Assembly: GCA_002269645.1 (NCBI GenBank)
Contig: NIVC01000514.1
Span: 62,001 to 126,000 of the forward strand
Origin: Macrostomum lignano
Taxonomy: Eukaryota
Direction of reading: 5' to 3'
DNA length: 64,000 nt
How positions within the stretch are numbered: position 1 is the stretch's first letter; each line of letters opens with the position of its first letter. This document shows positions 17,563 through 49,591 of this stretch, in pieces. The translations under genes were made by a program, and so were the position numbers. The notes beneath the pieces were generated by a model. It worked only from the letters and a program-made list of their open reading frames with translations, was not told the origin of the DNA and did no database searches.

Positions 17563-18460
17563 AATCCAATATACTAAATTCAATCTAGATACATTTGCTC
17601 CCATTGGGGATTTTTTAGTCCTAGTAGGTACTGGGATTATAGGATCATAACCATAATCTGGAGGGTGGCCTTTTTACTAGAAAATTCTGACATTTGCCCT
17701 TGTTGAAAAACTTGACGTATATAATTTTTAGAGAAACAAAGGTAAAACAAAAAAATAAAATTTTCTAGGAAAAAAGACACTAAAAGTTTAGTAAAACTCT
17801 TATTTCTAAAAATATATATTCATTAAAAAGTTCAAATATGTCATGTATTGTAAACAACTTTATGCTTGATATAAAAATCTTAATTTATGTCAATTTTATT
17901 AATGAATATAGACTTGAAAAACGAGTCTTTTCATTCCAGCATATGCCTACAATTTTAACTTTTAAAATCTCTCTAAATTCCCTACTTTATACATTTTTAG
18001 CCTAGGCTAACTCTCTAAAGATGTTTTTGCAAAGGTTTAGGCTATTTTGGTTATATTCATTATGTATAGATACTATAAAATAAAGCATAAAATATATGTG
18101 CATAGAGATTTGTTAAGTACAAAAAGTTATATAGAACATATTTATAATGTAAAAGGAATTTCTAGCCAAAATGATCATCATCATACTTAATTAGGCAAAA
18201 TGCATTATGAAAGTGTTACAGATTTTAAATACAAAAAAATTTAAAACCTTTTTATTACTTGACAAACTTTGAAAAGTAAGGGGTCTTTATACCTAAGCCA
18301 TTAAGATTTAGTAAATATTTTAATTTCAAAAAAACATTTAATAAAGTCTTACCCTAGTTGTAGGCCCCAATATAAAATAAACACTAGTTTTATTTTTGCT
18401 TTGCTTTTTGCATTCATTTGTGTCTAAAATAGGCCTCATTGAAACTATTTCCTCTGCAGG

Positions 18461-21400
18461 ATGCTGTCTCTGGGCTGTGTCCTGGTGCTGTGCCTGGCAG
18501 CCGCGGCCGGAGAGGACAAGGTGCGTTTTAACTTCTCCCAGACTGGCAAGATTCTCCTGTCTTGGGACGAAGTCTGGGAGGTCGGCAGCCCGAACATGAT
18601 GGCCTTCCTAATGCCCGACAAGAGCCTGAAGATCAAGATCGCCCTGCAAGGCAGGGCGGACATTGGCCACTCGGCCGTTCTCAAGTACAAGTGCGCCAAT
18701 AGCGCCACCTTCAACACCATCGACCTGTCGTCGGTGACCCGCCACCAGGAGCGGTGCGAGAGCACGCAGATCCCGTTCTCGGTGCGCATCATCGATGCCA
18801 AGGAGGGCTCCTACGAGTTCAAGCTGCTGGATACGCCGCTGGGCTCCTACGACGTGTTCAACAGCAAGCTGGAGCTGTTGGTGGAAGTGCTTGTGGCCGG
18901 ACAGCCGGAGGTGAAGCTGGTGTCCAACAGCCTGTTCGTGTGGAGTCTGGAACCCCTGGGCAAATACAGAAGCAAGACGTCCAGCGGCTCGTCCATCTCT
19001 ACTCGCTTTCTGACGCCGGATGCCGTGTCGTTTCTCAAGAACCTGAAGATGGAGTCCAACTTCGGCTTTAAGGAATTTCTCGACCCCTCCGTGGTCAACG
19101 CGCTAAGAAATGCCCCGCCGTTTCTCAGGGCCAAGATCAACATGGGAGCCGTGCTCAACTTCGATGCCGGCTCCTGCGAGAACTACCAGGTGTCCCGGGC
19201 GGCTCTGTTCGTGAATTATCACTCAAAGCTTGACGACAAGGCGCAGAACCTGCTCAAGCACATCCACCTGAACCTGGCCACCGGCAGGCTGCACTACGCC
19301 GCCTACGGCCTCAGCGCCAGCATTTTCAGTTCCTTCGAGGGGCGCTCGCCGACGCAGGTCGGCATCTGCGCCACGCTGTCGTTTTCCGGCCAGGGCCAGC
19401 CATACGACCGGACCTTCTCCGTTGAGCAGAAGATCCCCAGGGACAAGGTGATGTACACCAAGCAGGGAGTCAACGCGCCTGACTGCTCTCTACCCGACAA
19501 CGTGAATGAAGAGCCGATCTTCATATTCTCCGGCATGGACCACACGCCGCTGGTGTGCCCCATCATCTGCTCGGACCCGCTCACTGTCTACAAGTTCACG
19601 CACACCAGCAAGGACCACAGGAGGAAGGCTCTGACCCCTATGAGCACCAAGGACTGGACAGAGGTTGACGGCATCCGGGTTTCCAAGACAGGCAACATCA
19701 TCGAGTTCCCGCCGGCGGCGCAGAACCGTCACGCCGGCCAGTACATGTGCGAGGCGGGCAACAAGAAGTTCACATTTAACGCGGACGTAGTCAGCATGCC
19801 GCAGTTCAGCTACAAGCCGTCCGATGGCCCCAGCGAAGTGTCCGGCAGCCTGCCAGCCGTCATCTACGCCATGGAGGGCGAGTCCATGTCCTACAACTGC
19901 TCCACTTATTTCAACAACGTCGCCCAGGTGATCGCCGAGCCCGTGTTCTATTCGCCGGCCGTTCGCGAAAGCGCGGACTGGAAGGAGCTGCGGATGAGCG
20001 AGTTCAACTCGCTGTTCGGCTCGCGTCCGGTGTCGGTGGACACGCTGACCTCCCTGACGGACCGGCGGACCATCAACATCACGGTGAGCAGGGTGCCGCC
20101 CGGTGACTCCTCGACCGGCAGGGACTTCACCCACCGCGTCATCTGCCGGGCCACCGTCGGCAAAGCGGACGCTGAGAAGATCGGCATGCCGAAATACGTC
20201 GTGGAGTCTGGCAGCAGCGTGTTCTTCCTACCTCGGCCAACTCCTGCCAGCTTCGACCTGAGCAAGGCCAGGAACTGCTCGGAGCAGCGCTGCTCCACCG
20301 CGTCCGGGGCCGAGTTCTCCGTGGCTCTCAAGCCCGAGGTCACCGCTAAGCTCAAAGCTATCGGCGTGGAGGTGATGGCCATGTTTAAGATCGACGATGT
20401 CTATCTGAAGGACCTGAACATCATCAACCAGAAGGGCGTGTCCGAAATTACCTTCGAACGCGATACTAACAGGCTGACGTTCAAGGTGAGCTGCTGGTTC
20501 CAACTGGTCTTGTCAGGTTCAAGGTAGCCGGTTTCAACCAGCTAGACCGGTATCGCACCGTCCTCTTCTGGAGTGGGCCCTAGATCCCTGCTGTGGCCAC
20601 TGGAGTGACCCTGTTGTGGCCACTGGAGTGATCCCTGCTGTGGCCACTGGAGTGACCCTGTTGTGGCCACTGGAGTGACCCTGTTGTGGCCACTGAAGTG
20701 ACCCTGTTGTGGTCACTGGAGTGACCCTGTTTTGGCCACTGGAGTGACCCTTGTGCCCACTGGAGTGACCCTTGTTGTAACTACTGGAGTGACCCTGTTG
20801 TGATGTGACCACGTACTGGAGTGACCCTTGTGGACACTGGAGTGACCCTTGTGGCCACTGGAGTAACCCTTGTTGTAACTACTGGAGTGACCCTTGTGGC
20901 CACTGGAGTAACCCTTGTTGTAACTACTGGAGTGACCCTGCTGTGCTGTGACCACGTACTGGAGTGACCCTTGTGGACACTGGAGTGACCCTTGTGGCCA
21001 CTGGAGTGACCCTTGTGGACACTGGAGTGACCCTTGTGGACACTGGAGTGACCCTTGTGGACACTGGAGTGACCCTTGTGGACACTGGAGTGACCCTTGT
21101 TATGACTACTGGAGTAACCCTGTTTTGGTCACTAGAGTAGTTTCTACATGTATTGTGTTCCACGCAAAGACCCGTGTAGTGATTCCTGGTGTGGGCCCTG
21201 GATTGGTTCCTGCAGTGGCTCCCCTAGTGCTGACACCCACCGTGTTCAAGAGCCCAAAGAACGCTGGCTGCTGTGCACTCCGCCTGCTAGCCTCACCTCG
21301 GCCTCGATGTCGCCAAAACTCTGCCCTTAGTCGAGTTCGAACTCCCATCCCGCTGCCTGTAGGTGCACCCCATCACCGACGACAAGGTGCTGGTCGAGCT

Positions 21401-21756
21401 TCAGAAGCGCAAGACCCTCACGCCGGTGTTCAACTTCCGCTACCCCAGCCGGGTCAGCGGCCTGGTTAACCTTCAGCTGCATAAAGACCGACACGGCTCG
21501 CGCGATGTGGCCGCCGGCGACAAAGACTGCCGGGCCGACCGCATGTGCTTCTACTCTACGGACTTTGATGTGGCTTCCAGCCTCCGGCCCATCGTAATGG
21601 GTATAGACTTTCAGGTGAGGCTTGTCTGTCTGTATGTCTGTCTGTCCGTCTGTCTGTCTGTATGTCTTTCTGTCTGTCTGTCTCTCTGTCTGTCTGTCTC
21701 TCTGTCTCTCTGTCTGTCTATCTGTCTCTGTCTGTCTGTCTGTCTGTCTATCTGTC

Positions 21757-21789
<33 letters not shown>

Positions 21790-21812
21790 GTCTGTCTGTC
21801 TGTCTATCTGTC

Positions 21813-21879
<67 letters not shown>

Positions 21880-21886
21880 GTCTGTC

Positions 21887-21925
<39 letters not shown>

Positions 21926-24900
21926 GTGTGTCTGAAACTGTGAAACTGCCTCCCCAAGCCGACACCACCCGCTCGGTCCCGCAGGGCAAGCCGGTGCTGG
22001 AGGTGGCTTCGGCCGGGCCGAGCATCCTGGTGGCCATCCTAATCGCCTTCCTGCTGCTGCTGCTGCTCGCCGCCCTTCTGGTCTTCCTGCTGCGCCGCGA
22101 CTCCGGCCAGACGTACATGCTGGACGAGAAGGAGCGGCAGCAAGGCAACCACCCGGACTTGGAGGCCAAGGAAGAGCAGTTCAAGGAGTACCAGCGGCCC
22201 GAGGAAGGCGGCCTGAAGGCCTCTCGGCTGTCCCTGAGCTCCAGCATCTCGGCTGCCAGCAAAGACGACCAGGAGCTGGACGAGTACGGCAACGATGACG
22301 ACATTGATGTCGGTGAGTGATTGGGTTGTCGGCACTGATGTCGGTGAGTGATTGGGTTGTCGGCACTGATGTCGGTGAGTGATTGGGTTGTCGGCACTGA
22401 TGTCGGTGAGTGATTGGGTTGTCGGCACTGATGTCGGTGAGTGATTGGGTTGTCGGCACTGATGTCGGTGAGTGATTGGGTTGTCGGCACTGATGTCGGT
22501 GAGTGATTGGGTTGTCGGCACTGATGTCGGTGAGTGATTGGGTTGTCGGCACTGATGTCGGTGAGTGATTGGGGGCCGGGCCTTGTCTATTGCTGAGCTA
22601 TTGGCCTGTTGAATTGTTGAATCAATAGGAAATCAATAATTGTTTTGCACTGAAAGATATGAAATATGAAAGCCAGTTCCTATGGCTAGAGGTTCCATTG
22701 CTAGTTTAACGGGCCAGCGAATACAATAGGCGAATAGGGCCTCACTCATAGCGGCATCACTGCTTCAAGGTCAAACTGTTTTGTTAAGGTCACCGTCTTT
22801 CAATGCGAAATTCAAAGAAATGAATCTGCTGTATTGCATGCATATGCGAGCTATAGTTGGGCCGCACCCAGTCATGGCGCTGCGCTCGCGAGTAGTAAAT
22901 ATGATTTATCCATCCGTCACGCCTGTCTGCGCTGGCCTGACTGATCCTGTTAGCGCTGGCTGCGGGCCGGGGGTGGCGGCCGCTGGGTGGTGACGCATGC
23001 GGCTGGCGGGCCTCGGCCTGCAAGAGGGAGTGAGTGGCTCGCATGTCCCCGGGCTTCGCGGCTGCTAAACTGCAGTGGCTGCTTTTGTCCTTCATCCCGG
23101 TCAGTCAGCCGCTGCGCGTCTGTCGGTCATAAATTAAAAATATGTTCCCACTGGGGTGGCGGGCTCTGCGACTCTTCCAGGCTGACGTGTTTCGCTTGGC
23201 TCTGATGGCGGAGATGGCAGCGCATTTATGGGAGCTGGGAGCTGCAGATGCAGCATTGGAGGGAGAAACTGGCCCGCCGAAGTTCTTTATTCCCCACCCG
23301 GATGGGGCTGCAGTTTTAGATGTCCCGAGTCTCATCATATGCCTAAATTATTTCCGAATAGTGTGCTTCCAAATAAAGTTTTGTAGTTTCCCAAGTCTGA
23401 TGATTGCACATTGCTTGAAACTTGTAGTGTTGGAAAATATTCTTGTTCACAGATATGCGAAATTTCGGTCTTGTGAAAGAATCCTGCTCACAAGTATTTC
23501 GGTCTTGCGAAAGAATCCTGCTCACAAGTATTTCGGTCTTGTGAGAGAATCCTGCTCACAAGTATTTCGGTCTTGCGAAAGAATCCTGCTCACAAGTATT
23601 TCGGTCTTGCGAAAGAATCCTGCTCACACGTATTTCGGTCTTGTGAAAGAATCCTGCTCACAAGTATTTCGGTCTTGCGAAAGAATCCTGCTCACAAGTA
23701 TTTCGGTCTTGTGAGAGAATCCTGCTCACACGTATTTCGGTCTTGTGAAAGAATCCTGCTCACACGTATTTCGGTCTTGTGAAAGAATCCTGCTCACACG
23801 TATTTCGGTCTTGTGAAAGAATCCTGCTCACAAGTATTTCGGTCTTGTGAGAGAATCCTGCTCACACGTATTTCGGTCTTGTGAAAGAATCCTGCTCACA
23901 AGTATTTCGGTCTTGTGAAAGAATCCTGCTCACACGTATTTCGGTCTTGTGAAAGAATCCTGCTCACAAGTATTTCGGTCTTGCGAAAGAATCCTGCTCA
24001 CAAGTATTTCGGTCTTGCGAAAGAATCCTGCTCACAAGTATTTCGGTCTTGCGAAAGAATCCTGCTCACAAATATGTGGAATTTCGGCCTTGTATTATAT
24101 AAAGCGTTCGAAATGCAATGCGATATGCAGATACGGGCAAAGGTTTGATTTCTAAAAAAGGGTCAGCAACTTCGTCTGCCTAAAAATCATGCACCTGCAC
24201 TAATTTCCCGCGACACATCTGGCGCTGCTGCAACATTGCAGAGGAAAGCGGAAAGAATTCGGGTTTGCTTTGCTGCGCCAAGTGCACTGCTGAGAAACTC
24301 TGATGCCGCTCTGCAACATTTCCGACTTTATCGCTAAATATGGCTGAAGAATCGCTCTAAATTGCGCGCTTGCATGGCCTGTCTGACTATTATTGTAATA
24401 ATTCGACTGGCTGTTAATAGTTGGCTGGCTCTGCGGTCTCCGTGTGTGAACTGGTTGCCTCCCAGCCCGTTCGTGCTGCCTGCTAGCTAGCATAATTAAT
24501 TAATCCATGACTGGCTGCTCTATTTAGCATCTTAGCTCTCTTCTTGAGCCAGAGGCTCTTTGTCTGGCTAGTGCCCCTAGCCCCTAGGTACTGTTTACGT
24601 GGCTTTTTTATCAAGATACAAGCGTGCTCATTACTCGTTTTACTCGTTTCACGTTATGGAGTGATCTCCATGGAGTTAGGAGTGTCAAACCTTTGCCCGA
24701 ATCTGCGTGTCGCATTCCACACTAATGAGTAGTTCAGATTCAGCACCGCTCAAGTTCAGATCCCGAAACGAGAATTGAGGAATTCTGATCCCGCACTTGA
24801 AATATTTCTAACGCAGCTCTGTGTGAGCTCTGCGATTTGGATAATCTCGGTTGTTACTTTGATTGAAGAGCCGTTTTTGAAGTTGAGCAGTCTAAGTAAT

Positions 24901-26060
24901 CCATGCAATGTGCTCGGTTCTGTTTTGGAAATCTTCTAAGCAGGCAAAGGCCGGCTACTTGTATACTCGTAGAAGGGAGGCTCGCAGTCCCCGGGGAGTG
25001 CTGGGCAAGGCCTGCCAATCTGGCTGAGTGCAGCTCCGCAAGAGACCGGTCCCCGGTTCCCCATTGCCAGCTCCGCAGGTCCCCGGTTCCCCATTGCCAG
25101 CTCCGCAGGTCCCCGGTTCCCCATTGCCAGCTCCGCAGGTCCCCGGTTCCCCATTGCCAGCTCCGCAGGTCCCCGGTTCCCCATTGCCAGCTCCGCAGGT
25201 CCCCGGTTCCCCATTGCCAGCTCCGCAGGTCCCCGGTTCCCCATTGCCAGCTCCGCAGAGACCGATCCCCGGTTCCCCATTGCCAGCTCCGCAGGTCCCC
25301 GGTTCCCCATTGCCAGCTCCGCAGAGACCGATCCCCGGTTCCCCATTGCCAGCTCCGCAGAGACCGATCCCCGGTTCCCCATTGCCAGCTCCGCAGAGAC
25401 CGATCCCCGGTTCCCCATTGCCAGCTCCGCAGGTCCCCGGTTCCCCATTGCCAGCTCCGCAGAGACCGATCCCCGGTTCCCCATTGCCAGCTCCGCAGAG
25501 ACCGATCCCCGGTTCCCCATTGCCAGCTCCGCAGGTCCCCGGTTCCCCATTGCCAGCTCCGCAGAGACCGATCCCCGGTTCCCCATTGCCAGCTCCGCAG
25601 GTCCCCGGTTCCCCATTGCCAGCTCCGCAGAGACCGATCCCCGGTTCCCCATTGCCAGCTCCGCAGGTCCCCGGTTCCCCATTGCCAGCTCCGCAGAGAC
25701 CGATCCCCGGTTCCCCATTGCCAGCTCCGCAGAGACCGATCCCCGGTTCCCCATTGCCAGCTCCGCAGAGACCGATCCCCGGTTCCCCATTGCCAGCTCC
25801 GCAGATCCGCGGTTCCCCACTGCCAGCTCCGCAGATCCCCGGTTCCCCACTGCCAGCTCCGCAGATCCCCGGTTCCCCACTGCCAGCTCCGCAGATCCCC
25901 GGTTCCCCATTGCCAGCTCCGCAGATCCCCGGTTCCCCACTGCCAGCTCCGCCCCTCCCCGCGCACTTCTGCAGGTCGCTTCGCCGAGGACGGCTCCTTC
26001 ATCGGCGGCTACACGACGGACCCCAAGAAGCGGGAGGCCTTCAACGCTCACCGGGTCTGA
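18461..26060 (+). CDS. L1CAM/neuroglian-related Ig-superfamily type-I membrane protein with atypical ectodomain, 896 aa; exons 18461-20485, 21363-21614, 21985-22312, 25975-26060
   Basis: Signal peptide [17 protein letters not shown]. Ig-like motifs [10 protein letters not shown] and [11 protein letters not shown]...[32 protein letters not shown]1-type tail [43 protein letters not shown]. Phases 0,0,1 are consistent. Total 2691 nt. Confidence 0.82.
20563..21125. repeat. ~20-22-bp minisatellite (ccactggagtgaccctgttgtgg) in intron 1 of the L1-like gene
   Basis: Direct periodicity. Confidence 0.93.
21623..21933. repeat. (TCTG)n / (TC)n microsatellite filling intron 2 of the L1-like gene
   Basis: Direct reading. 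Confidence 0.95.
22304..22571. repeat. 31-bp minisatellite (tgatgtcg|gtgagtgattgggttgtcggcac) whose unit spans the exon 3 donor site
   Basis: About 8.5 copies. The first copy contains the true donor at 22312/22313. Confidence 0.95.
23456..24070. repeat. 34-bp minisatellite (tatttcggtcttgtgaaagaatcctgctcacaag)
   Basis: Direct periodicity. Confidence 0.95.
25035..25952. repeat. 28/34-bp two-variant minisatellite (ccccggttccccattgccagctccgcag[gt|agaccgat]) ending ~22 bp before the last L1-like exon
   Basis: Direct periodicity. Explains the track ORFs at 24854-26203. Confidence 0.95.
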
Positions 26061-26436
26061 GACGGGCTGATTGGGACTCGGCTTACAGACTATTTTTTAA
26101 CGATTTCGCGAATCCTCAGACTGTTTGTCGCCGCATTCGATTCCTGCTTGTCTGCCTGCCTGCTGCTGTACGAGTCTACAAGTGCGGCTCGCTGTCTTTA
26201 TAAGCCGGCACACTTATTATTATTCACTGGCGCACCAACTTCTTGATGATTGATTAGCCTGCAAGGCTTTAGTGGATTATTATAAATACGAGCTATATTT
26301 TACTCCTGTCCCCCCGGGCTCTGTCGTCTTGCCGCGCCGCTGCTTTTGCTGCGCAGTGGGGCGCTGCTGCGTTTGTTTCAGCACGTTTACTGCTGCACAC
26401 TGCCTACTACCTCTGCCCCATGCTCTGTCTGTCCAT

Positions 26437-27480
26437 TTCTCATGATCTCTCTCCGTTTCTCATGATCTCACTCCATTTCTCATTATCTCTCTCCGTTTCT
26501 CATGATCTCACTCCATTTCTCATGATCTCTCTCCGTTTCTCATGATCTCACTCCGTTTCTCATGATCTCTCTCCGTTTCTCATGATCTCACTCCATTTCT
26601 CATGATCTCTCTCCGTTTCTCATGATCTCACTCCATTTCTCATTATCTCTCTCCGTTTCTCATGATCTCACTCCATTTCTCATGATCTCTCTCCGTTTCT
26701 CATGATCTCACTCCGTTTCTCATGATCTCTCTCCGTTTCTCATGATCTCACTCCATTTCTCATGATCTCTCTCCGTTTCTCATGATCTCTCTCCGTTTCT
26801 CATGATCTCACTCTATTTCTCATGATCTCACTCCATTTCTCATGATCTCTCTCCGTTTCTCATGATCTCACTCCATTTCTCATGATCTCTCTCCGTTTCT
26901 CATGATCTCACTCCATTTCTCATGATCTCTCTCCGTTTCTCATGATCTCACTCCATTTCTCATGATCTCTCTCCGTTTCTCATGATCTCTCTCCGTTTCT
27001 CATGATCTCACTCTATTTCTCATGATCTCACTCCATTTCTCATGATCTCTCTCCGTTTCTCATGATCTCACTCTATTTCTCATGATCTCTCTCCGTTCTC
27101 ACGATCTCTCTCCATATCTCATGATCTCTCCATATCTCATGATCTCTCCTTTTCTCATGATCTCTCCGTTTCTCATGATCTCTCCGTTTCTCATGATCTC
27201 TCCGTTTCTCATGATCTCTCCGTTTCTCATGATCTCTCCGTTTCTCATGATCTCTCCATATCTCATGATCTCTCCGTTTCTCATGATCTCTCCATTTCCC
27301 ATGATCTCTCCATATCTCATGATCTCTCCGTTTCTCATGATCTCTCCATTTCCCATGATCTCTCAATTTCTCATGATCTCTCTCCGTTTCTCATGATCTC
27401 TCCATTTCTCATGATCTCTCTCCGTTTCTCATGATCTCTCCATTTCTCATGATCTCTCTCCATTTCTCACGATCTCTCTC
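26437..27480. repeat. 19-20-bp minisatellite (tctcatgatctctctccgtt)
   Basis: Direct periodicity. Confidence 0.95.
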
Positions 27481-29055
27481 CGTTCCTCACGCCCTCCATC
27501 TCTCAGTGCGCAGGCCCGGCACGAGGGCGATCCAAAAATGTTTTTGCGTAGCGAAATTCTTCACAGACTCCAGGCCCGACCCCGCCTTGCCACATGGGTT
27601 AACTGCAACCTTAGCATAATACTGCTCTGCGCGCATTGCCTCAGACAAGCCTTTTAGCTGTTCTGTGTTCGAGAACCCGCGCTCCACTGCTTCCGCGTTT
27701 TCCATTGTATGCAATTTATTTTTGTTGCTTGCTGTTGCTGAACTTGCGTTTGGGTCGCCTTTGCGGCCTGAGATGCCCGCCCGGCAGTCTGCTGAGCATA
27801 GCTGAACTCTGTCTTGCTCTGTGCTGCTCACTGAGACCGTAAGCCTCCCAGATCCCCAGTTGCTGGGCCAGCCTCCCAGATCCCCAGTTGCTGGGCCAGC
27901 CTCCCAGACCCCAGTTGATGGGTGTCTGCCAGATCATCAGTTGCTTGGTGAGTTTCCCAGATCCCCAGACTGGATGCAAGCCGTCCCTCACCTGCCCATT
28001 ACAAAACTGTCCTCAGTGCCAGCCAGCAGGTCTGCCAGGGCTCTCTGCCGCGAATCGCCGCTGGCAGCTGCTGTCTCTGCGGGTCTGCTGTTTCGCTCTC
28101 TGAGTCTCCCCCCGGGCCGCAGTTACCGAGGCTTGGGCTCAGTCTGCAGCTCATCAGTGCTTTTCGTATTCGATTTTTTTAGAATTTTACCAATGCAATC
28201 CAATTTTAGACTTTGCTGTTGAATATAGGTTCGCTCGCTACTACTTAGCTGGCAAATATAGTAGCGCATCTAGCTTATTATTTTCTAATTAAAATAGACA
28301 TTATAAAGCAATTTGCTTGCAATTGTTTGTAGCGAGTAGTGCAATGCCCAGTGTCTGCAATTTTGCCATTTTTATCGCCTAAGCATCTTATTTAATTGTT
28401 GATGTTATTCAGCAAATATTTACTCTCTCTTGTATTCTGTTTGTCTATTCCTGCGCTTCAATTTTTGTTCTCATAGCCACTGTATTTTTGGCTGCCGGCT
28501 AATCTCGGGTGTGGCTTTGCGGTTAATCGTGGGCAGGACTTGATTCGTTTGATTCGCTTCTGCAGCTTTTTCTGCCCGGCTCCCCAGCTCGCGGCTCTGT
28601 TGTACTGGCGGCTTGTTTGATGCTTTTCTGTTGCCCTGATTGTTGTGGCCGATTCAATAAATATGATTAGCATAAATGTAACCCAATCAAGTTTCTAGAC
28701 CGAAATTGGCTCTTTTTGCTTGTTGCTGAAATTCGACACAGCTTCGCATTCCGTCTTCCTGCTTCACACCTGAGGAGCTGGCCTATGCAATCTGAACGGC
28801 TGCTCCAAGATCACAGTTATATTTTCAGGAGCGCTGCGGGCATTGTTGCGGCATCGTCTCGGAGCCAGAACTGAGGCGTTTCTGCCCAATCTTCTGGCTC
28901 CTGAGCACACAACACGCAACCCAAGGGGGGGGGGAACAGGGGGGACATGTCCCCTCAAAAGCTGTTGGGGGCATGCCAATGCTTTGTTCCCTTCGCCCAA
29001 CCTTGTGACCCGTTATGGAAATCAATAATTTTGCTTCAGGGTGACAAAATACAGT

Positions 29056-32772: not shown

Positions 32773-44590
<11,818 letters not shown>

Positions 44591-47794: not shown

Positions 47795-49591
47795 CTAGTC
47801 CTGAGGCGCCAGCTTCTTGTCGCCCAGCTCCACCTCGCTGCAGTCCGGCGTGCCCGAGCTGCTGCCCATCGGTGGCGCGGGCCTCACGAGGACGATGTTG
47901 CTGGAGCTTCGCTGCCCCCCGGTCTTGGTGATCAGGTTGTACAGCAGCTCGACGAGCTCGCACAGGCTCAGCAGGCTGCAGCCGAGGTAGATGCCCGCAG
48001 TGCCGCCAATGTCGGCGATGAACGTCTGCAGAGAGTAGCCGGGCGACAGCCGGATCTGCGAGCTGCGCGACTGCTGGCTGCGCAGCGTCACCTCCAGGCC
48101 CGAGCGGGAGAAGAACTTGTTGGCCAGAGCTTCTGCGTCAGAAATCTTCTCCTCCTCATCTTCCGCAGAAAAGTGCTGCCTCACGGAGTGAAGTATCGCC
48201 CTCCAGGCAGGCCGATATGTGCTTGGAGATTTGTCCAGAATAGTCTTCATGATGCCCGTGACAAGCCGGATCTGCCCGTTCTCGTTGGGCCAGTTCGCGC
48301 TGGAGGTGCTGGTCTCGTACTTCCGTGACACGCACAGCTGCCTGCTCTGGCACAGCTGCTGGAAGTCGCTCAGCGCGGCCGTGTCAGCTGTGAACGCCTG
48401 CAGGAGGTTCAACTCGATCTGAGACTCGTTCAGGCCGCTCGCATTCAGGCAGAAGCGCAGGTGCCTGAACTGCCACGGCAGCGGGTTCACGTACGGACTG
48501 CAGCCGCCGTTCACAGACAGCTGCCGAGCGAACTCTGAGAAGTAGCAGAAGCTGTTGCTGTAGCCGAACGCGTACGCCGAGCCGTCGTACGGATTGACGA
48601 ACTTCACGTCGGGAGCCTCCGTCAGGCAGCGTCCGCCGTACGCCTCGGGCTCCTTCTTGATGCTCTGCATGCTGAGCCCGATGCTGTAGGACCTGCCGGG
48701 AGCGAGCAGGAAGTTGGTCACGAACCTGCTCGGGTACTCGCCTCGAGGAGCCAGGTACAGCCTCATTCCCATCGGCCTGTCGATCTCGTAGGGCGAGTCC
48801 AGGTCCCAGTCGTACACGAGTATTTGTATTTTGTTGTACAGCGGGACCGTCACGCTCATTACATGTGAATATGTCAAAACTTTCAATGCGTCATCAAAGT
48901 CGGTGAAGTGCGGATCCAGAATGAACTGGAAGCTGATCTCCGAGTTGACCTTGCTCAGCTCAGCGAGTCTCTGCTCGGTCAGCTCGATCTTGAGACACTT
49001 GAGGTGATTCGGGTGGTAGAAGGGTCTGAGGGAGACGCCTGACTTGCTGTCGTTCTTCAGTACCGTCTGCTGCTCCTTGTGAGCGAGATGGTCCACCAGC
49101 AAGCTGTACGGCATTGACTGGATGGCGGACTTCAGTCTGTACAGCTTCATCTGCTCGATCTGAGACTTAGTGGCGTTCGCGAGCGACGAGTTGAGCAGCC
49201 GCTGCAGCACCGAGTCGAAGGTGGCGAGCGAGGCGGTCATCCTGGCGTTGATGTCGGTGACGACCTCGCTGGCGAGCGTGACGGAGTAGGTCCCCGACAC
49301 CTGGACATTGTTGCAGAAGTACACGTCGGGAAACTGGAAGTCCACAGCCTCGGCCTCGTAGGAAGTACTGACCTCGCCTCTGACGAGCTTGCTTGTGAAG
49401 CCGTGCATGCTAAAGGTGAACACAGCGAGCAGGGCCAGGAAGGCCAGCAGCCAGCAGAGCTTGATGTAGAGCGGCCTCTGGCCCGCCAGCCTGCTGAGCC
49501 CGTGGGCTGTGGTCTCGCTGGCAGCCGCGGCCAGGACCTGCGTCAGCAGCGCTCCGGTGCTGGGGGTCTCGTCCGCTGCGGCAGTTGGCAT
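47795..49591 (-). CDS. DEG/ENaC (amiloride-sensitive sodium channel family) subunit, single exon, 598 aa
   Basis: N-terminal TTAHG (HG motif), TM1 WLLAFLALLAVFTF, FPDVYFCN, GMRLY..PRGEYP, Cys-rich thumb region, and pre-TM2/TM2 FIADIGGTAGIYLGCSLLSLCELVELL with a G-x-S selectivity filter. Confidence 0.93.
   Translation of the reverse strand: MPTAAADETPSTGALLTQVLAAAASETTAHGLSRLAGQRPLYIKLCWLLAFLALLAVFTFSMHGFTSKLVRGEVSTSYEAEAVDFQFPDVYFCNNVQVSGTYSVTLASEVVTDINARMTASLATFDSVLQRLLNSSLANATKSQIEQMKLYRLKSAIQSMPYSLLVDHLAHKEQQTVLKNDSKSGVSLRPFYHPNHLKCLKIELTEQRLAELSKVNSEISFQFILDPHFTDFDDALKVLTYSHVMSVTVPLYNKIQILVYDWDLDSPYEIDRPMGMRLYLAPRGEYPSRFVTNFLLAPGRSYSIGLSMQSIKKEPEAYGGRCLTEAPDVKFVNPYDGSAYAFGYSNSFCYFSEFARQLSVNGGCSPYVNPLPWQFRHLRFCLNASGLNESQIELNLLQAFTADTAALSDFQQLCQSRQLCVSRKYETSTSSANWPNENGQIRLVTGIMKTILDKSPSTYRPAWRAILHSVRQHFSAEDEEEKISDAEALANKFFSRSGLEVTLRSQQSRSSQIRLSPGYSLQTFIADIGGTAGIYLGCSLLSLCELVELLYNLITKTGGQRSSSNIVLVRPAPPMGSSSGTPDCSEVELGDKKLAPQD

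Follow-up and report, generated by a model that had tools for sequence, protein, structure and literature searches.

The cytoplasmic tail of L1-family cell adhesion molecules, represented in Pfam by Bravo_FIGEY (PF13882), has to our knowledge been described only on a fixed ectodomain, six immunoglobulin (Ig) domains followed by fibronectin type III (FN3) domains. Hortsch et al. 1998 (PMC2133023) showed that, in neuroglian, ankyrin binding requires a 36-aa segment of this tail and that this segment suffices for it. The present analysis concerns a gene of the flatworm Macrostomum lignano that lies on the forward (+) strand of a 64,000-nt stretch of contig NIVC01000514.1 (positions 62,001 to 126,000; assembly GCA_002269645.1). 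This whole stretch is referred to below as the window, and coordinates are given in its own numbering. The gene occupies positions 18461-26060 and joins an L1-type tail to an ectodomain of a different design. The explanation judged probable is that the locus is an expressed M. lignano gene (Mlig021638) whose product, a type I single-pass membrane glycoprotein, is an L1-type cell adhesion molecule on the inside and, by its ectodomain, not a member of the L1 family; it would act in adhesion and bind ankyrin.

The tail is best read as a true L1-family Bravo_FIGEY module. Bravo_FIGEY was the sole Pfam family found in the protein; the match covered residues 796-883 (starting at 22093 and ending at 26018) and profile positions 1-84 of 86, with a score of 60.9 bits (E 2.7e-16) against a gathering cut-off of 23.8 bits, well outside what chance would give. 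The initial annotation, made by inspection of the nucleotide sequence, had recognized an L1-family pattern in the transmembrane segment and tail, and all the motifs it quoted were present in the translation: the RR..G..Y...EKE pattern, FKEY, LDEYGNDD and the F.EDGSFIGxY block, and also GQYMCEAG and a 16-residue stretch, both quoted for the Ig-like folds. When the tail was compared with that of human L1CAM, the two were 34% identical over 99 aa (E 3e-10) and collinear at four motif blocks. Residues F871, E873, D874, G875, S876, F877, I878, G879 and Y881 were invariant among three paralogues. A FIGQY-type motif and the tyrosine upstream of it were present as LDEY (Y860) and Y881, the Q being replaced by G (FIGGY); both tyrosines of the 36-aa ankyrin-binding segment were found. 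The tail, of about 100 aa, was disordered in the structural model described below (predicted local distance difference test, pLDDT, under 50), as expected of an L1-type tail. A search of the Protein Data Bank (PDB) sequences with the tail gave nothing below E 0.1, and a word-index protein search with the tail alone as query returned no match.

The initial annotation had recognized nothing in the first ~400 aa. The ectodomain had no match in Pfam even at E<=10, and searches of the PDB sequences with the protein and with a family profile gave nothing below E 0.1. An AlphaFold2 (AF2) model was built on 25 family sequences and had a mean pLDDT of 74.9 and a predicted template modelling score (pTM) of 0.66, the ectodomain blocks mostly reaching a pLDDT of 80-90; when the N-terminal 335 aa were modelled alone, these values were 85.9 and 0.82. 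The translation and the model indicated type I topology, with a signal peptide (hydrophobic N-terminus, residues 1-17), one transmembrane helix (residues 772-795, 22021-22092, followed directly by RR) and a cytoplasmic C-terminus. Between signal peptide and membrane, five domains were delimited from the DSSP assignments and pLDDT. D1 (residues ~20-165, 18518-18955) was an 11-stranded beta-sandwich of ~145 aa, and D2 (residues ~183-345, 19007-19495) a mixed alpha/beta domain of ~165 aa. D3 (residues ~350-450, 19508-19810) and D4 (residues ~465-590, 19853-20230), the latter longer and possibly V-like, were predicted to be Ig domains. The membrane-proximal D5 (residues ~600-760) was again mixed alpha/beta, of ~160 aa, and ended above the membrane in a conserved 13-residue stretch. 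D3 and D4 had the cysteines of the B-F disulfide (C366/C370 with C430, and C480 with C562), and D3 the G.Y.C motif of the F-strand (GQYMC430). In 5-7 of the 25 family members Ig_2 and Ig_3 were found below threshold, and UniProt names some of the paralogues 'Ig-like domain-containing'.

Structural comparison by Foldseek pointed in the same direction. The whole model matched in the PDB only chains of tandem Ig-type sandwiches, the best being titin Ig81-83 (E 1.4e-9), with IL-18R, IL-1R and PTP-delta Ig1-Fn2 also matched and cadherins and Fabs weaker (E >=3.5e-7); titin, IL-18R and IL-1R fell at E 1e-9 to 1e-8, with low global TM-scores. The N-terminal 335 aa matched only weak generic sandwiches in the PDB (best E 2.4e-4; query-normalised TM-score, TMq, <=0.28), and in the viral structure library BFVD generic sandwiches and nothing specific; over the PDB and viral library searches together TMq was <=0.29. 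On the predicted structure, D2 would thus have no convincing solved relative in the PDB. Comparison of all ten domain pairs with hhalign gave no sign of internal duplication (every probability <1%), and no Pfam fn3 match was seen in any of the 25 members at E<=1. The proposals of the initial annotation that only about two Ig-like folds are present and that the ectodomain is not the canonical one of L1 are borne out by this five-domain model, in which D3 and D4 are the sole Ig domains; resolution into a series of six Ig and several FN3 domains, the outcome that would have spoken against it, was not obtained.

The spliced product of four exons has 896 aa, with the frame intact throughout. Exon 1 (18461-20485) contains 675 codons in one open reading frame (ORF), as had been proposed, and encodes the signal peptide, D1-D4 and the start of D5. 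Exon 2 (21363-21614, 84 codons) encodes the remainder of D5. Exon 3 (21985-22312) encodes the stalk, the transmembrane helix and the proximal three-quarters of the L1-type tail, and ends in phase 1. Exon 4 (25975-26060) completes a split glycine codon and adds 27 residues and the stop; it encodes the end of the tail with the FIGQY-type motif, where ankyrin presumably binds. All three introns have GT..AG borders. Intron 1 (20486-21362, 877 nt) is mostly a 21-bp/143-bp minisatellite, and intron 2 (21615-21984, 370 nt) is nearly all (CTGT)n microsatellite; both are as short and repeat-filled as had been noted, and alignment with the paralogues showed no residues missing at the exon junctions, so the view that no exons are hidden there stands. 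Intron 3 (22313-25974, 3662 nt) is also repeat-filled and lies just before F.EDGSFIG, a position conserved in the paralogues. Since M. lignano genes have on average 4.9 introns (PMC5730564), three introns are unremarkable. An AG acceptor (18459-18460) stands immediately 5' of the ATG of exon 1; this fits a 5' untranslated exon or a spliced-leader acceptor, and 38.8% of M. lignano genes are trans-spliced (PMC5730564).

A public M. lignano protein of 896 aa (BOX15_Mlig021638g1, here P0001) was 99% identical to the spliced model over 100% of its length, and its exon joins were identical (TFKV/HPITDD, GIDFQ/GKPV and DIDV-G-RFAEDG). Its annotation derives from genome-guided RNA-seq assembly with StringTie, TACO, TBONE and TransDecoder (PMC5730564). 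Contig NIVC01003986.1 of the same assembly (L003) was also collinear with the window (nucleotide identity 93-98%); by this measure it carries a second genomic copy of the gene, with the same four exons and shorter repeat-filled introns. The M. lignano assembly is substantially redundant owing to extra large chromosomes (PMC5730564), and the species is called a hidden polyploid in a later paper (PMC10468722). The join of exon 1 to the transmembrane and tail exons, on which the initial annotation depended, is real: P0001, the second genomic copy and paralogues in which the first two introns are absent all agree on it.

Several repeat features of the locus were recorded. A perfect array of 31 bp x 8.7 (22305-22573, + strand) begins within exon 3, and the exon 3 donor (GATGTCG/GTGAGT) occurs in it nine times in succession without change; in the second copy of the gene there are at least 12 such donors. 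Read-through of the first donor would give V-G-E-stop, so that a tail without the FIGGY ankyrin-binding end would result if the intron were retained or a later donor used. The minisatellites of intron 3 are highly regular (34 bp x 18 and 30/66 bp x 28; 23462-24075 and 25048-25952), and the 3' flank contains a 20 bp x 55 array (26428-27489). Minisatellites also generate spurious long ORFs on both strands, such as one of 382 aa at 24854-26002 (-). Elsewhere in the window, an apparently intact non-LTR retrotransposon occupies 34231-39612, with two ORFs on the (-) strand (34320-38138 and 38138-39061), namely ORF2 of 1272 aa (endonuclease, reverse transcriptase and RNase H) and ORF1 of 307 aa. This 5.4-kb block falls within a region matching the tyrosine-phosphatase gene that neighbours the second copy and is absent from the otherwise collinear NIVC01003986.1, which indicates a recent or polymorphic insertion.

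The window gene is one member of a multigene family that, by sequence search, is so far confined to M. lignano. When 1.84 billion cluster representatives were searched exhaustively with HMMER (E<=1e-3), using an ectodomain profile built from three paralogues, 21 matches were obtained. Those extending over much or all of the ectodomain, 11 in number, were all from M. lignano; the other ten were giant Ig-repeat proteins in which the match was limited to profile positions ~417-465, a result that confirms D3 as an Ig domain. At 50% identity the M. lignano relatives fall into ~10 clusters, several of them with two or three near-identical copies. A word-index search with the 25-sequence alignment returned only two proteins, both already known. 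The paralogues (Mlig020049, Mlig011430/022107, Mlig015009, Mlig003394/026651, Mlig022515 and Mlig009881/020816) have the same five domains in ectodomains that are 35-54% identical, and the conserved cysteines, transmembrane segment and juxtamembrane tail are the same. Its members already have entries in public databases, with automatically assigned names ('Bravo_FIGEY domain-containing', 'Neurofascin/L1/NrCAM C-terminal domain-containing', 'Ig-like domain-containing' or 'hypothetical protein'); literature searches by Mlig gene name, or for L1CAM in Macrostomum, found no paper.

Bravo_FIGEY was found in 15 of the 25 family members. The complete module, ending in FIG(G/D/E)Y, was present in the window gene, Mlig020049, Mlig011430/022107 and Mlig015009, while Mlig003394/026651, Mlig022515 and Mlig009881 had the juxtamembrane half only (R..Y..EEKE..P..EAK.E.FKEY). 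No FIGxY exon was found within 8 kb downstream of one paralogue, P0028, and the group to which it belongs probably lacks the distal tail. All the groups of ~900 aa with full-length models carry at least the membrane-proximal half of an L1-type tail, which places the fusion before the radiation of the family. It follows that the fusion of this ectodomain with an L1-type tail was already present in the common ancestor of the ~900-aa members, and that in some lineages the distal part, which would bind ankyrin, has decayed. Paralogues sharing the tail and differing in exon 1 had been anticipated; the reverse was found, the ectodomain being common and the tail decaying in some. In four more distant clusters (P0008, P0009, P0011 and P0041; 530-720 aa, 19-22% identity) D5 and the tail are missing, and in three of these a short hydrophobic segment forms the C-terminus. 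A link to MACPF/MPEG1, suggested by the UniRef name of a distant paralogue cluster (P0040), was rejected, as Pfam found nothing in P0040.

Contig NIVC01001207.1 carries two paralogues in tandem, P0043 (890 aa) and P0003 (904 aa). In each, the ectodomain, the transmembrane segment and ~80% of the tail are encoded in one continuous exon, and the single intron falls just before F.EDGSFIG, a position shared with the other paralogues where examined. Family members outside the window are arranged as head-to-tail tandem pairs (L001, 3102-6689 and 10001-12800; L002, 1723-4009 and 8001-10622), and one such pair has been artefactually fused in the UniRef entry P0002 (1558 aa). Introns 1 and 2 were present in both genomic copies of the window gene and absent from P0003 and P0043. 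Their lengths differ between the copies (877 nt in the window against ~611 nt in the second copy for intron 1; 370 against ~290 nt for intron 2), and both are flanked on both sides by AG/GTG and CAG/G. They look like lineage-specific gains with repeat expansion, that is, secondary introns.

This gene structure bears on the origin that the initial annotation had favoured, in which a foreign, intron-poor ectodomain landed by recent exon shuffling or retroposition upstream of the transmembrane and tail exons of an L1 gene. The 675 codons of exon 1, and the separate exons for transmembrane segment and tail in the window gene, would suit such an event. In P0003 and P0043, however, no exon boundary separates the modules; the introns that do so in the window gene are private to it, made of tandem repeats and apparently secondary, and the fusion is older than the family's radiation. 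The only intron common to the paralogues lies inside the tail. A processed retrogene is an intronless copy of an intron-containing parent, with a poly(A) remnant and target-site duplications; judged by introns, the window gene, with three, and its paralogues, with one, do not fit. No donor or parent gene for the ectodomain was found among the 1.84 billion representatives. Large single-exon genes are, moreover, common in the window: a 598-aa amiloride-sensitive sodium channel (ASC/DEG-ENaC; 47795-49591, -) is encoded in a single ORF and a SET-domain ORF (1258-2241, +) is uninterrupted, so long coding exons are ordinary in this region. Nothing in the exon structure thus points to recent exon shuffling or retroposition, and such an origin is considered unlikely. 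The present arrangement could have arisen in either of two ways: an L1-type gene may have been radically remodelled, or an L1 tail may have been fused long ago to another ectodomain.

A second explanation would make the gene the flatworm orthologue of L1CAM/neuroglian, with a canonical ectodomain of six Ig and several FN3 domains that has diverged past recognition. The unmistakably L1-type tail, the two Ig domains and the weak Ig-like Foldseek matches of the D1 sandwich are what such divergence would leave. An ectodomain of ~750 aa, however, has room for ~7 Ig-sized domains rather than the 9-11 of L1; the model gave five domains with high confidence, including two of mixed alpha/beta type; FN3 was seen in none of the 25 family members and no repeat between domains was detectable. 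In addition, annotated flatworm neuroglian orthologues have been reported separately: Schistosoma mansoni Smp_176350 is described as a neuroglian orthologue (PMC6743411), and a planarian L1-like transcript has also been reported. Simple divergence from a canonical L1 protein is therefore judged quite improbable, and a canonical L1 gene probably coexists with the present family in M. lignano.

An error of annotation or assembly, in which two neighbouring genes or a pseudogene were misjoined across repeat-filled gaps, might be suspected from the minisatellites in the introns, the ninefold repetition of the exon 3 donor and the evident fusion of two tandem paralogues in P0002. It is very improbable, given the intact frame and consensus GT..AG sites of the four exons, the same structure in the second genomic copy, the identical joins of the RNA-seq-guided model and the paralogues that encode the same junctions without introns. 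Convergence of short acidic and tyrosine motifs in a disordered tail of biased composition, instead of homology, is hardly credible for a Pfam match over 84 of 86 positions that scores 2.5 times the gathering threshold and stays in register with human L1CAM at four separate blocks.

Some observations weigh against an ankyrin-coupled protein with a distinct ectodomain, the explanation preferred here. The window motif is FIGGY rather than FIGQY; CHL1 has FIGAY, which indicates that the Q position tolerates change. The spacing from DEY to FIGGY is 21 residues, compared with 18 in human L1CAM and 17 in neuroglian (Y1217 and Y1234; PMC2133023). In several paralogues the distal FIGxY part is missing, through loss or because it was never there, so ankyrin coupling would not be essential to the function of the ectodomain. 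Further, the structural model depends on a shallow alignment of sequences from a single species, and for D2 and D5 the lack of a known fold means that no convincing PDB match was obtained, in the case of D5 within the search with the whole model only.

By analogy with L1, neurofascin and neuroglian, the Ig-containing ectodomain may serve cell-cell or cell-matrix recognition. The distal tail, from LDEY to FIGGY, would recruit ankyrin and through it the spectrin skeleton. The tyrosine of FIGGY could act as a phospho-switch, its phosphorylation releasing ankyrin as in L1-family proteins. These proposals follow precedents from the L1 family (PMC2133023, PMC2173803).

A broader suggestion, made tentatively, is that these proteins represent an undescribed class of cell-surface receptors, possibly flatworm-wide, in which the L1 ankyrin-coupling tail serves an unrelated ectodomain made up in part of two alpha/beta domains and a sandwich that lack a solved relative. 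If so, the L1 tail would be a portable module, open to use in proteins without the Ig6-FN3 arrangement, and coupling to the ankyrin-based membrane skeleton could be combined in modular fashion with other recognition domains; in Macrostomum the family would have expanded, with some copies shedding the ankyrin-binding end. The paralogues would then form a natural series with complete, truncated and absent tails that could show what the tail contributes, and the family would add two domains that are predicted with confidence and have no solved relative. These prospects are bounded by the earlier deposition of the gene under automatic names and by a family that is, as far as sequence searches show, restricted to M. 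lignano. This species is amenable to transgenesis and RNAi, so function can be tested.

Set beside L1CAM, neurofascin, NrCAM, CHL1, Drosophila neuroglian and Caenorhabditis elegans SAX-7, the window protein has the same type I single-pass topology, a tail homologous over its whole length (R..G..Y...EKE, F.EY, the L.EY tyrosine and the F.EDGSFIG.Y ankyrin-binding segment) and, in common with them, an ectodomain with no fewer than two Ig domains. It differs in that its ectodomain has ~750 aa rather than ~1100 aa, and in that AF2 and DSSP gave two Ig domains (D3 and D4) where the L1 family has six N-terminal domains of the I-set. It has no FN3 domain, compared with three to five in L1, and the membrane-proximal position is taken in the model by the mixed alpha/beta D5; the D1 sandwich and the two alpha/beta domains have no counterpart in L1. 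The window protein also has FIGGY in place of FIGQY, lacks an RSLE or YRSL sorting motif and, unlike the L1 family, belongs to a multi-copy M. lignano family with decaying tails. From its own paralogues the window gene differs by two additional repeat-filled introns. Outside M. lignano, a similar layout is that of a 'Bravo_FIGEY domain-containing protein' of the cestode Schistocephalus solidus (A0A183SHS7), which has 915 aa, a signal peptide at 1-19, an ectodomain at 20-768, a transmembrane segment at 769-792 and a tail of 123 aa (PMC12090676). A0A183SHS7 was not detected by the three-sequence ectodomain profile at E<=1e-3; compared by topology only, it is almost identical to the window protein (transmembrane segment at 772-795 of 896 aa). 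Homology between the two ectodomains is a lead, and the five-domain design may be more widely distributed among flatworms.

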